Both the position numbers and the translations under genes were made by a program. 64,000 bases of DNA from Calcarisporiella thermophila CBS 279.70 (taxonomy: Eukaryota; Fungi; Calcarisporiellomycota): positions 562,952-626,951 of the forward strand of contig NW_027192209.1 in the NCBI RefSeq assembly GCF_041956535.1, written 5' to 3'. The notes under the pieces were generated by a model. It saw only the letters and a program-made list of their open reading frames with translations, did not search any database and was not told where the DNA came from. Shown one piece after another: positions 6,941 to 62,232 of this stretch. How positions within the stretch are numbered: the stretch's first letter is position 1; each line of letters begins with the position of its first letter.

Positions 6941-8822
6941 TCAGCTCTCCACATGCCCGTTTATCGGCTTCATCCCAGGCTGGTTCGTCACCAACGAAGG
7001 GAACATACAGCCTCCACCCGGCGGAGGCATTGGGATGGACACCTGCATCGCGACAGCAGGGGCCAAGCCCTCCTGTATGGCCGAGGCGGAGGAGTAGTAG
7101 TGGTGTTGCTGAAACGGGGGTTGCTGCTGCTGCTGCTGCTGGAGGTGATACGGAATCCCAGGCTGCGGCGAATAGGACAATGGAGGTGCTGGTTGCGGAT
7201 AAGACCGCGCTGAAAGCGAGGCGTTACGCTGTGGGGGCATGATGGAGGGGGTAGCCTGTGCATCCACCGCTGCGCCGGGCTTCTCCTCCTCCGAGCCGGA
7301 GCTGGTGTCTGCTTTTGGTCCACTGGCGGATTCCGTAGCACGGAACTTTTGGTCGGCCGACGCAATCGTTGGGGGCGGCGTCAGGATGGACGCGGGTGGG
7401 TGCGCAGGGATCTCAGGGGGGGCAACCGACCCATTTCTTGGCAGTCCACCTCTCAATCCATCACAATGCAACGGCTCAGCCGGGGCGTGGCAAATGGCCG
7501 GATGTGTGTATGCCGAGTGATACACCTCTGTTGGCGTGGGCGGAGGGAGATGTGGCCGGTAGTGGGGGGGATGCACGGGCGGAGGAGGCGGGCGCACCAT
7601 GGGGACGTAGATGGAGGGCTGTTCGACCTGGCTTACCAGATTCACAGCTGGGAGGGGCGGGTGCGGGGGAGGGTTGGAATAGAGCTGCGATCGCTGTTGC
7701 AACTGTTCAGGGCTGTCAATGACGACGATGACCTCCGGGGTCCTTGCAGTCGTGATGCCGAACTGAGAATGAAGCGGCTGCGGCTGAGAGCGAGGGGAAG
7801 TGTAATGGGGGGGAGTACGCATCATAGGAGGACTAGGGGTTGTGCGATCGGCAGAGGGCGAGTGATGGGAGGGCTGTAACTGCTGATGAGGCATCATCGC
7901 CTTGTGTTCTCCTCTAGCTCTGTAATGCGGGGACACTCCATTCTTTCCTCCATTCGCTGATTCCGCCGCATTCCCACCCGCATTCCCACTCCAGCTTCCC
8001 CCCGCTCCATTATTAGCTTGCTTTGACCGCGTTGGGGATACCGGCGCTTGCTTTCCTGGCGACCCTGAGCGCTCAGAGGGGGGTGTGGCAAGCAGTTCTC
8101 CAGGATAGTTGGAGAGGTGATTGCGGCGATGTTCCTCCTCTGCCAGCCAGTGACGCAGCAACTGATCACCATAATTCTGCAGCTCCTCAATAGGCACTGC
8201 AAGATGGAATTCGCACAGGACCAGAAATTCTCGCTCCAGGATATTGAGCTCGTGTACAGGGAGGCCTCCAACCTAATGGGTAGGAATCATCCATGATTAA
8301 TTCCCGTCATGGTTAGAAAGAAAGAGAGGAGAGAGGGGGGCGGAGAGGGAATACCTTTGCGTAGCGTGAGTTGGTGTAAAATACATCTGAAAAATACTTT
8401 GATGCAATCACCACCCCCGAGATAATTAGCCGGTGAATGTTGTATGAATTGATGGTAAATGGATGGCCAGTTTTTTGGACCGTGTATCGAGCCATACGGT
8501 CAAAATAGACCAGCAGCGACAGGAAACATTCATTGGGGCAAGGGCAATATTTGAGAATGCGTACCAGATACGCGTGGATGTCGATGGCGGGCAGTGAACG
8601 CGCGTGGAAGCGAGTGTAATTTGGGTGCACCCAAGATTCGTCACCCTCACGCGTTGATAGAGCGCGAGTGGGGCTTTCTGGAGCACCAGAGCCGGCCACA
8701 GCGGTAGAAGAGCTCAGCGGCTTGAGCAGCTGATCATTCGCTTTTGTGATGCGCTCAAGGCAGCACGCAAGCATGCGCAACATTTCAAGGGTTGGGAAAT
8801 TGGCAAGATTGAGGTGGTGCAT
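6941..8822 (-). CDS. Pho85-type cyclin (Pcl6/Pcl7-like) with long Pro/Ser/Gln-rich C-terminal tail
   Basis: FHARSLPAIDIHAYLVRILKYCP...NSYNIHRLIISGVVIASKYFSDVFYTNSRYAK | intron ~8273-8354 | VGGLPVHELNILEREFL...EELQNYGDQLL. Confidence 0.92.
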
Positions 8823-53907: not shown

Positions 53908-54777
53908 CTACAATTTTCCTTGCCCAGGATTTGGAAGAGCTTTAGTCAAACTTTGCTGAAGTAATTTAAGCAATTGAACTAACGGGCCTTGAGCTTGATT
54001 GTTCATATCTGTTTGCTGCATAGAAGGCATCTGGGTAGCCTGAGAGGATTGAGATGCACTCTGAGTAGCGGAAGCTTGAGAAGAGGATTGTGCTGGACCT
54101 GAAGACTGGGAAGCTTGAGTAGGAGCCCCAGATTGCGAGGAGGATTGAGTTTGTTGTCCCATTTGACCAGAAGATTGAGTAGCTTGAGCAGAAGCCCCAG
54201 ATTGCGAGGAGGCTTGAGTTTGTTGTCCCATTTGACCAGAAGATTGAGTAGCTTGAGCAGAAGCCCCAGATTGCGAGGAGGATTGAGTTTGTTGTCCCAT
54301 TTGACCAGAAGATTGAGTAGCTTGAGCAGAAGCTCCAGACTGCGAGGAGGATTGAGTTTGTTGTCCCATTTGACCAGAAGATTGAGTAGCTTGCGCAGAA
54401 GTTCCAGGCTGTGGCTGTGATGCAGATGAGGTTTGAGCAGAAGATTCAGTTGGACTAGTTGATGGAGATTGAGCGGCGGAACCTGCCTGGGCAAAAGGCA
54501 TTGCTTGATCGGAAGGAGAGGATTGAGGAGCAGACGAAGCCTGGCTGGGAGAGGACGCCTGGTTTTGAGACTGATTCTGGGGAGAAGATGATGGGCTTTG
54601 ACTAGAAGAAGCCTGTGAGGGAGATGCAGATTGAGAAGAAGAATCTGTCTGACTGGGGGACGAGGCCTGAGAGAGCCCTTGATTTAAAGGGGACCCAAAG
54701 AAAAATGGGGACGCGTCGGATAGAGTGTAGATGCAGAAAATAAAAACGAGATAAATTAAGCCAAAAGCGCACTTCAT
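53908..54777 (-). CDS. Secreted Ser/Gln-rich protein with 4 tandem 23-aa (69-bp) repeats
   Basis: Hydrophobic signal peptide (…TLSDA/SPFFFG); repeat SAQATQSSGQMGQQTQSSSQSGA at ~54110-54400; short amphipathic C-terminal helix; intronless. Confidence 0.85.
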   Translation of the reverse strand: MKCAFGLIYLVFIFCIYTLSDASPFFFGSPLNQGLSQASSPSQTDSSSQSASPSQASSSQSPSSSPQNQSQNQASSPSQASSAPQSSPSDQAMPFAQAGSAAQSPSTSPTESSAQTSSASQPQPGTSAQATQSSGQMGQQTQSSSQSGASAQATQSSGQMGQQTQSSSQSGASAQATQSSGQMGQQTQASSQSGASAQATQSSGQMGQQTQSSSQSGAPTQASQSSGPAQSSSQASATQSASQSSQATQMPSMQQTDMNNQAQGPLVQLLKLLQQSLTKALPNPGQGKL

Positions 54778-60469: not shown

Positions 60470-60488
60470 TATAAAAACATTATAAATA
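60470..60488 (+). promoter_or_regulatory. Candidate TATA boxes upstream of the repeat-peptide precursor
   Basis: tataaaa and tataaata ~50-65 nt before ATG 60537 (AT-rich background lowers specificity). Confidence 0.4.
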
Positions 60489-60536: not shown

Positions 60537-62232
60537 ATGAAGGGAATTAAAAGCGCCTTTATCTTTCTTCTTATTTCCGCTCTATGTCTTAGTCAGACGA
60601 GTGCATTACCTGCACCAAAATATGAGGAGCCTGCCAAAAGAGACATCAAGGGCATGTTGCAAAACTTTAGACAGTTCCAGGAGATGCTATCGAATGCTAT
60701 GACATTAGGCAACATGTTTATGGAGCAGGCCATTAAAGAAGAAAAAGCAGGACAAGCTCAAGGTGCGCCAGTCCAGAGTCAGGGAACGAAGCCGCCAGCT
60801 AAAAGAGACATCAAGGGCATGTTGCAAAACTTCAGGCAATTTCAAGAGTTTTTATCGAATGCTATGACGTTAGGCAATATGATGATGAGTGAGGCCATCA
60901 AAGAAGAAAAAGAAAAACAAGCGTCAGGTGCGCCAGTCCAGAGCCAGGGAAAGAAGCCGCCAGCTAAAAGAGACATCAAGGNNNNNNNNNNNNNNNNNNN
61001 NNNNNNNNNNNNNNNNNNNNNNNNNNNNNNNNNNNNNNNNNNNNNNNNNNNNNNNNNNNNNNNNNNNNNNNNNNNNNNNNNNNNNNNNNNNNNNNNNNNN
61101 NNNNNNNNNNNNNNNNNNNNNNNNNNNNNNNNNNNNNNNNNNNNNNNNNNNNNNNNNNNNNNNNNNNNNNNNNNNNNNNNNNNNNNNNNNNNNNNNNNNN
61201 NNNNNNNNNNNNNNNNNNNNNNNNNNNNNNNNNNNNNNNNNNNNNNNNNNNNNNNNNNNNNNNNNNNNNNNNNNNNNNNNNNNNNNNNNNNNNNNNNNNN
61301 NNNNNNNNNNNNNNNNNNNNNNNNNNNNNNNNNNNNNNNNNNNNNNNNNNNNNNNNNNNNNNNNNNNNNNNNNNNNNNNNNNNNNNNNNNNNNNNNNNNN
61401 NNNNNNNNNNNNNNNNNNNNNNNNNNNNNNNNNNNNNNNNNNNNNNNNNNNNNNNNNNNNNNNNNNNNNNNNNNNNNNNNNNNNNNNNNNNNNNNNNNNN
61501 NNNNNNNNNNNNNNNNNNNNNNNNNNNNNNNNNNNNNNNNNNNNNNNNNNNNNNNNNNNNNNNNNNNNNNNNNNNNNNNNNNNNNNNNNNNNNNNNNNNN
61601 NNNNNNNNNNNNNNNNNNNNNNNNNNNNNNNNNNNNNNNNNNNNNNNNNNNNNNNNNNNNNNNNNNNNNNNNNNNNNNNNNNNNNNNNNNNNNNNNNNNN
61701 NNNNNNNNNNNNNNNNNNNNNNNNNNNNNNNNNNNNNNNNNNNNNNNNNNNNNNNNNNNNNNNNNNNNNNNNNNNNNNNNNNNNNNNNNNNNNNNNNNNN
61801 NNNNNNNNNNNNNNNNNNNNNNNNNNNNNNNNNTAAAGAGAAAAAGCAGGACAAGCTCAAGGTGCGCCAGTCCAGAGTCAGGGAACGAAGCCGCCAGCTA
61901 AAAGAGACATCAAGGGCATGTTGCAAAACTTTAGACAGTTCCAGGAGATGCTATCGAATGCTATGACATTAGGCAATATGATGATGAGCGAGGCCATCAA
62001 AGAAGAAAAAGCAGGACAAGCCCAAGGTGCGCCAGTCCAGAGTCAGGGAAAGAAGCCGCCAGCTAAAAGAGACACCAAGGCCATGTTGCAAAACTTTAGG
62101 CAATTCCAGGAGATGCTATCGAATGCTATGACGTTAGGCAACATGTTTATGGAGCAGGCCATCAAAGAAGAAAAAGCAGGACAAGCTCAAGGTGCACCTG
62201 TCCAAGGACAGAGCGCGAAACCACCTGCTTGA
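60537..62232 (+). CDS. Kex2-processed repeat protein (KEP): secreted polypeptide precursor with ~9-10 x 55-aa units; spans an assembly gap
   Basis: Signal peptide MKGIKSAFIFLLISALCLSQTSA, pro-piece LPAPKYEEPAKR, then 165-bp units starting at 60642, 60807, 60972 ... 61906, 62071. Each full unit ends PPAKR; the last ends KPPA*. Confidence 0.88.
60982..61833. other. Assembly gap (N run) inside the tandem repeat
   Basis: Run of n; the same repeat flanks both sides. Confidence 0.99.

Follow-up and report, generated by a model that had tools for sequence, protein, structure and literature searches.

What does the tandem repeat at positions 60537-62232 of a 64,000-nucleotide stretch of DNA (the window) from the thermophilic fungus Calcarisporiella thermophila encode, and what is the origin of the repeated peptide? 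A first-pass annotation had read the locus as a secreted polyprotein from which Kex2-type cleavage would release about ten copies of a Met-rich amphipathic peptide, and had placed the host among the early-diverging fungi. The all-protein match agreed on the host (C. thermophila, Mucoromycota). Our overall account is that the locus is a gene for a Kex2-processed repeat protein (KEP) whose peptide would have moved between kingdoms, most likely from a prokaryote-type single-unit gene. We put the probability of this account at about 0.6.

Results

A Gene for a Tandem-Repeat Precursor

The features of the locus, with coordinates in the window, strand and basis, are as follows.

60470..60488, +, two TATA-like motifs (TATAAAA, TATAAATA), 50-67 bp upstream of the ATG; sequence reading
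60537, +, ATG start; read from sequence
60537..60605, +, signal peptide, 23 aa, predicted cut after ...TSA; sequence inspection
60606..60641, +, pro-piece LPAPKYEEPAKR, 12 aa, ending in the first KR site; sequence
60642..60806, +, unit 1, 53-aa peptide plus KR; Tandem Repeats Finder (TRF), profile A1 (E 4.5e-38)
60807..60971, +, unit 2, 53-aa peptide plus KR; carries F15, MMSE and EKQASG
60972..60981, +, first 10 bases (DIK) of a third unit, interrupted by the gap; sequence
60982..61833, no strand, assembly gap, 852 N, the length being an estimate; out of frame and out of repeat phase as written
61834..61905, +, unit tail (...EKAGQAQG...PPAKR); profile A1 (E 1.1e-7, profile positions 33-55)
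61906..62070, +, penultimate unit, 53-aa peptide plus KR; unit alignment and profile A1
62071..62232, +, last unit, ending ...PPA and then the TGA stop, without KR; sequence, unit alignment and profile A1

The signal peptide carries K2 and K5 in its n-region, a 12-residue h-region (AFIFLLISALCL) with a mean Kyte-Doolittle value of 2.9, and small residues at -1 and -3, with the predicted cut lying between TSA and LP. On either side of the gap, TRF returned a repeat period of 165 (86-92% matches). Before the gap, the visible units start at 60642, 60807 and 60972, and after it at 61906 and 62071; four are complete (85-93% identity), and two further partial units lie at the gap. Each visible unit start is preceded by KR (5/5 junctions), and the final unit closes with ...PPA immediately ahead of the KR position; the stop codon lies at 62230-62232. 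The sole other dibasic pair is a KK followed by Pro-Pro, which would be a poor kexin site. The signal peptide, the short pro-piece ending in KR and the 165-bp KR-ended units described in the first-pass annotation were therefore all seen in the sequence, with four units complete.

The minus strand of the locus holds just short open reading frames (ORFs; 40-59 aa), the gene is not flanked by direct or inverted repeats, and the TATA-like motifs at 60470..60488 are a possible core promoter. One intron-free C. thermophila gene is the best explanation of the locus. The public model (XP_069248942.1 / KAL1917670.1, VTP21DRAFT_4063, "uncharacterized protein") has 120 aa, and in the all-protein search the first 118 residues of the polyprotein were identical to it. 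The model ends at 1.6 units because of the assembly gap, and would therefore fail KEP pipelines that require three repeats; catalogues built from public annotation would miss the gene.

No ORF of at least 150 aa is present between 54778 and 60500 or after 62232. Along the window the GC content drops steadily; it is about 58-61% at the left end and 31-37% in the surroundings of the polyprotein gene. A neighbor at 53908-54777 (-) encodes a secreted Ser/Gln-rich repeat protein of 289 aa; a relationship to the Met-rich unit through a QAQG..VQ motif was rejected as not significant (BLASTP E 0.55).

The Assembly Gap and the Number of Units

As written, the two sides of the gap do not join. With 852 N, the frame to the left (60537, 0 mod 3) differs from that to the right (61918, 1 mod 3), so that read-through meets a stop at 61901. 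The unit starts across the gap are 934 bp apart, which is 5.66 units and no whole number. The first bases after the gap (61834-61845) have one A fewer than the unit consensus, creating an apparent in-frame TAA; the missing A is probably a contig-edge error. Because the flanks share the unit, the strand and the orientation, and the right flank has neither a start nor a signal peptide of its own, a single array broken by an unresolved repeat is the simplest reading. No units were found on any other contig of the C. thermophila genome.

The unit count is firmly at least five, and would be 9-10 given a roughly correct gap estimate. The earlier figure of about ten copies thus holds as far as five or more units, but neither ten copies nor a continuous array follows from the assembly, in which frames and repeat phase mismatch at 852 N. 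The gap may conceal stops or frameshifts.

The Architecture Is That of a Kex2-Processed Repeat Protein

KEPs are a published class (PMC6339444, Le Marquer et al., 2019; PMC7329392, Umemura, 2020) recognized by a signal peptide, at least three repeats, and KR, RR or KK between the repeats (PMC6339444). They are common in Mucoromycota (9.15 per strain), where their units are often long (PMC6339444, PMC7329392). At the locus, inspection revealed a signal peptide and no further membrane segment, the remainder being amphipathic or hydrophilic. The near-identical repeats number at least three (four complete units), KR lies between them at all five visible junctions, and the genome encodes kexin. At least six kexin P-domain (PF01483) loci score above the cut-off in the C. 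thermophila genome (76-104 bits), including the following.

G000:C5:1110032-1112179, kexin P-domain locus (PF01483)
G000:C7:757755-759762, kexin P-domain locus (PF01483)
G000:C17:258385-258645, kexin P-domain locus (PF01483)
G000:C19:558104-558436, kexin P-domain locus (PF01483)

Kex2 is encoded by a single copy in most fungi. Two of the P-domain loci are arranged as inverted pairs, and one lies ~5 kb before the start of the window. An ORF of 64 aa that encodes a signal peptide and two RR sites (L028:1645-1839, -, corresponding to G000:C19:554644-554838) lies ~1.6 kb upstream of a kexin gene and is divergent from it; it is unrelated to the Met-rich unit.

Judged by its architecture, the predicted Met-rich polyprotein is a KEP. 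The earlier reading as a Kex2-type polyprotein is upheld by the architecture, the published KEP definition and the kexin loci in the genome. Its companion statement, that the locus fits no KR-separated class well, has to be corrected in so far as the published KEP class fits and the format is not new (PMC6339444, PMC7329392).

In the proposed pathway, signal peptidase would cut the precursor after Ala23, kexin in the Golgi would cut after every KR, and a Kex1-type carboxypeptidase would then trim the KR. Many copies of a neutral 53-aa peptide of 5.8 kDa would leave the cell.

The Unit Is a Neutral, Predicted Amphipathic Helix under Purifying Selection

The released unit is predicted to have 53 aa, a mass of 5.83 kDa, a pI of 6.3 and five Met residues. 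Cys, Tyr, Trp and His are all absent, and the GRAVY value is -0.62. The computed pI and the composition agree with the earlier description of a near-neutral unit that lacks these four residues. AlphaFold, run with a small alignment, returned a single helix of roughly 38 residues over residues 2-40 (pLDDT 81-88 over residues 1-30; pTM 0.38) and a disordered tail after residue 40. The hydrophobic moment of residues 1-34 is 0.39 at 100 degrees, a value reached by 0.3% of shuffles (p about 0.003). In one heptad register, 8 of the 10 a/d positions are hydrophobic, with extra Met and Leu at e and g. The moment, the helix and the disordered tail bear out the amphipathic helix followed by a flexible Gln/Gly/Pro tail that had been proposed.

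A two-unit AlphaFold model, whose helix packing is a prediction without an alignment, contains two helices (pLDDT 89-94; pTM 0.59). Foldseek of this model against the PDB returned generic helical hairpins only (E > 0.3). The model fits self-association of the predicted helices and is neutral as to function.

Variation between the units is concentrated in blocks (M/F at 15, FMEQ/MMSE at 26-29, AGQAQG/EKQASG at 36-41 and T/K at 49) that combine differently from unit to unit. Over the whole length, dS between units is 0.11-0.67 and dN 0.05-0.17; for the helix part, example comparisons gave dS 0.81 with dN 0.023, and dS 1.03 with dN 0.094. Divergence at silent sites far exceeds that at replacement sites, and the unit copies are therefore old and their peptide sequence is held by purifying selection, which speaks against a dead repeat.

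One Relative, on a Streptomyces Island

A phmmer search of 1.84 billion representative proteins returned three matches: the public model of the gene itself, WP_365982679.1, and an 894-aa metagenomic repeat protein. Profile comparison by hhalign (probability 1.3%) led us to discard the last of these (E 3e-5) as spurious. WP_365982679.1, a 75-aa hypothetical protein of Streptomyces sp. NPDC049585, scored E 1e-11 against the 1.84e9 proteins and 2e-24 with the profile. It consists of an actinomycete-type Sec signal peptide ending in ANA and then one unit, and is 67-70% identical to the fungal units; the alignment has 28 invariant columns, and in the core 22 of 23 positions are identical. Its mature part runs from 3 residues before the fungal unit start to about unit position 47, and beyond this part the fungal unit has in essence just a short linker that ends in KR. 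Because the predicted fungal product corresponds nearly end to end to the bacterial mature protein, the predicted cut sites gain independent support. The helix pattern is the same as in the fungal unit (hydrophobic moment 0.35), three Met residues (15, 20 and 25) are conserved between the fungal units and the Streptomyces protein, and the residue before the unit is Arg in both (AKR-D in the fungus, APR-D in Streptomyces). The EKQASG block of unit 2 resembles the Streptomyces sequence.

The Streptomyces gene lies on a 311-kb contig amid ordinary Streptomyces genes, and is therefore not fungal contamination. It resides in an island of ~6 kb (L004:5442-11642; JBFAPE010000006.1) with a GC3 of 0.65-0.85, vs. 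0.92-0.97 in the flanking core genes; the lowest values belong to the WP_365982679.1 gene (0.70) and to a neighbor encoding 294 aa (0.65). A large serine integrase (phrog_95, E 6e-81) occupies the end of the island, which also carries an HNH fragment and an uncalled 105-aa HNH ORF (7448-7765, -). A DUF6879 plus HTH_31/DUF5753 pair is found there as well. Judged by composition and context, the WP_365982679.1 gene is foreign in its Streptomyces host and a recent arrival. The 294-aa neighbor has no relative in 5.8 billion proteins, in the species genomes or in C. thermophila, so that synteny led to no further carrier.

Further searches for the unit pointed to the same pair of carriers. A profile search of an index of 5.8e9 proteins found WP_365982679.1 as the only relative. 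No relative emerged when 185,579 species genomes, along with metagenome and viral contigs, were scanned for the pattern; tblastn of phage and plasmid sequences was likewise negative. The profile was also run in six frames over species genomes of 401 Streptomyces and 401 Actinomycetes, again without a relative; the few matches in these 802 genomes (E 0.008-0.08, inside long ORFs) are at chance level. Across the whole C. thermophila genome, profile A1 at E<=10 matched the polyprotein locus only.

The first-pass annotation had proposed comparing one unit with protein collections, and no characterized family was matched. The best Pfam match (E 0.007) was under the cut-offs, no NCBIfam or PHROGs family matched the unit, PDB sequences gave E > 0.7, and the ESM Atlas scores (0.76 and 0.82) were under the lead level. 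Judged from these comparisons, the Met-rich peptide is a new, unnamed family with exactly one known relative, in another kingdom. The earlier suggestion of a new peptide family stands in so far as no curated family matches it; the family is, however, not private to the fungus, given the single-unit relative in Streptomyces.

Uncut Protein or Decaying Locus

Could the precursor be secreted uncut, as a wall or matrix repeat in which helical modules on Gln/Gly/Pro linkers pack together and KR is simply part of the linker? The two-unit model is more confident than the single-unit model (pLDDT 89-94 vs. 81-88; pTM 0.59 vs. 0.38), so neighboring helices of a single chain may pack together. The KR pair, however, is invariant at the five visible junctions although nearby linker residues vary (T/K, S/G), it also stands before the first unit, and the last unit stops exactly one residue ahead of the KR position. 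In Streptomyces the relative occurs as a single free unit, its mature N-terminus falling 3 residues ahead of the predicted start of the Kex2 product, and the C. thermophila genome holds several kexins. We consider an uncut protein improbable. A decaying or misassembled repeat, whose gap would separate two unconnected frames and which would yield no functional polyprotein, is less probable still and in our judgment very unlikely. It would account for the differing frames, the repeat phase that is off, the base missing at 61834-61845 with its in-frame TAA, and the position of the locus in AT-rich DNA (31-35% GC) without a nearby ORF of at least 150 aa. Nevertheless, the gap length is just an estimate, the missing base falls within 12 bases of a contig edge, and both flanks are open throughout in the unit frame. 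Start codon, signal peptide and stop are intact, as are the KR sites, and the units are under strong purifying selection.

Origin of the Peptide and Direction of the Proposed Transfer

With the KEP reading preferred, the shared unit points to a peptide family that would have moved between kingdoms. The fungal and Streptomyces units are ~70% identical in DNA, with pS 0.77-0.86 (silent sites saturated) and a core pN of 0.06. The DNA identity and the saturated silent sites speak against contamination and against a recent event; together with the low core pN they indicate that the split is old or fully ameliorated, and that the core is strongly constrained in both hosts. With only two known carriers, the direction of transfer cannot be read from a tree. 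In composition the fungal gene is native (GC3 0.48-0.49, like its neighbors).

In the scenario that we regard as most likely, the fungal lineage would long ago have acquired a single-unit prokaryote-type gene from a donor or mobile element as yet unsampled, and the gene would then have been multiplied in the fungus with a short KKPPAKR-type linker. A prokaryote-type ancestor is favored by the bacterial protein being one clean unit without partial neighbors, and by the bacterial gene riding a mobile element, a plausible vehicle. Transfer from bacterium to fungus is commoner, and that from eukaryote to bacterium rarer. We give the direction from prokaryote-type gene to fungus about an even chance. 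The Streptomyces copy is itself newly arrived and its 294-aa neighbor is an orphan, which rules out Streptomyces sp. NPDC049585 as the source; read most cautiously, both hosts would have drawn on an unsampled reservoir.

The reverse course would have the repeat arise in the Calcarisporiella lineage, an actinomycete mobile element later capturing one unit behind a bacterial signal peptide. Such an origin would suit a fungal gene that is native in composition and old (dS between units in the helix part up to about 1), and a bacterial copy that is a low-GC3 newcomer in one Streptomyces strain and absent from 401 other Streptomyces species and 401 other Actinomycetes genomes. The Arg before the unit in both proteins (AKR-D vs. 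APR-D) is likewise in line with it. Yet the bacterial mature protein is almost exactly one unit, which a random piece of the array would rarely give, the 294-aa island neighbor has no counterpart in the fungus, and eukaryote to bacterium is the rarer direction as a matter of general knowledge. We hold this reverse transfer to be unlikely.

Entry of a prokaryote-type gene into the fungus could also be one case of a broader habit, by which C. thermophila would repeatedly acquire small secreted peptides of actinomycete mobile elements and mass-produce them via Kex2 polyproteins, its expanded set of kexins helping. The wide hydrophobic a/d/e/g face of the Met-rich peptide would then build multi-helix bundles or barrels at surfaces or against competitors in hot compost-like habitats. 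This extension is doubtful. Our literature search on KEPs of bacterial origin found no relevant paper, and the word "horizontal" occurs 0 times in the KEP surveys (PMC6339444, PMC7329392).

Discussion

Possible Roles of the Released Peptide

The predicted helices, once released, would probably self-associate, forming bundles through a wide Met/Phe/Leu face, or would be active at an interface; candidates are the cell wall, a foreign membrane and the air-water boundary. A self-associating or interface-active role is our best guess, and a tentative one; it derives from the high copy number, the neutral charge, the wide Met/Phe/Leu face and the hydrophilic tail. Antagonism of competitors through their membranes appears unlikely, and a signaling role more unlikely again. 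The unit is neutral rather than cationic, and is therefore no classical antimicrobial peptide. Metal or ligand binding was considered because three Met residues are conserved across kingdoms.

A coat role argued from the absence of hydrophobins was dropped, as the genome has hydrophobin-like loci. Three matches to class-I hydrophobins (PF01185) were found (best 80 bits, E 4e-21), including the two below; to our knowledge, hydrophobins are usually held to be restricted to Dikarya.

G000:C25:89122-89352, +, hydrophobin-like match (PF01185)
G000:C18:373349-375051, -, hydrophobin-like match (PF01185)

Comparison with Known Systems

KEPs are numerous, and almost all are of unknown origin and function. 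The Met-rich polyprotein shares with them the signal peptide, at least three near-identical repeats and the KR between repeats; its unit also has a bacterial single-unit relative.

Among KR-processed precursors, the alpha-factor of Saccharomyces has units of 13 aa with EA/DA spacers. Both alpha-factor and Ece1 undergo the Kex2 and Kex1 processing of a secreted Golgi precursor that we propose for the Met-rich polyprotein. Candidalysin, from Candida Ece1, is amphipathic and helical, as the Met-rich unit is predicted to be, but it is cationic whereas the unit is neutral; the Ece1 peptides are non-identical, and neither alpha-factor nor Ece1 is homologous to the polyprotein. Precursors of the alpha-factor type have units of 9-24 aa with XA/XP (STE13) dipeptides after KR (PMC6339444). 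At our locus, the unit length is 53 aa, and DIKG or DTKA comes after KR. The long units and the missing STE13 dipeptide confirm that alpha-factor precursors do not fit, as first suggested.

The same holds for the dikaritin or ustiloxin type, in which short cores contain Tyr/Trp and a UstYa gene is nearby. The unit has neither Tyr nor Trp, and the whole C. thermophila genome gave no match to UstYa/DUF3328 (PF11807), although the control genomes lacked PF11807 matches too, which leaves that search unvalidated; the earlier view that dikaritin precursors do not fit is in keeping with both results. Hydrophobins have eight conserved Cys residues and most chaplins two. The Met-rich unit has no Cys and no Pfam match, and so resembles neither.

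The nearest analogs in peptide size and copy number are the Rep1 repellents, and the STE13 signature is absent from both. Rep1 peptides act at the hyphal surface and form amyloid-like fibrils, whereas the Met-rich unit is predicted to form a long alpha-helix. The all-protein phmmer search (1.84 billion proteins) detected no similarity between Rep1 and the unit. Rep1 of Ustilago maydis is, according to PMC6339444, a KR-processed polyprotein that yields peptides of about 37 aa.

The closest comparison is with WP_365982679.1 itself, which is homologous over almost the whole unit and, like the fungal precursor, has a signal peptide for secretion. In contrast to the fungal polyprotein, it consists of one unit behind a bacterial Sec signal, lacks a KR linker and is encoded in an integrase island. 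The protein is uncharacterized and falls outside any named family. These comparisons suggest that (i) the core of a KEP can share ancestry with a prokaryotic peptide, a point not discussed in PMC6339444 or PMC7329392; (ii) one peptide exists in two natural forms, single and multiplied; and (iii) the pair may point to a route by which fungi could gain and amplify extracellular peptides.
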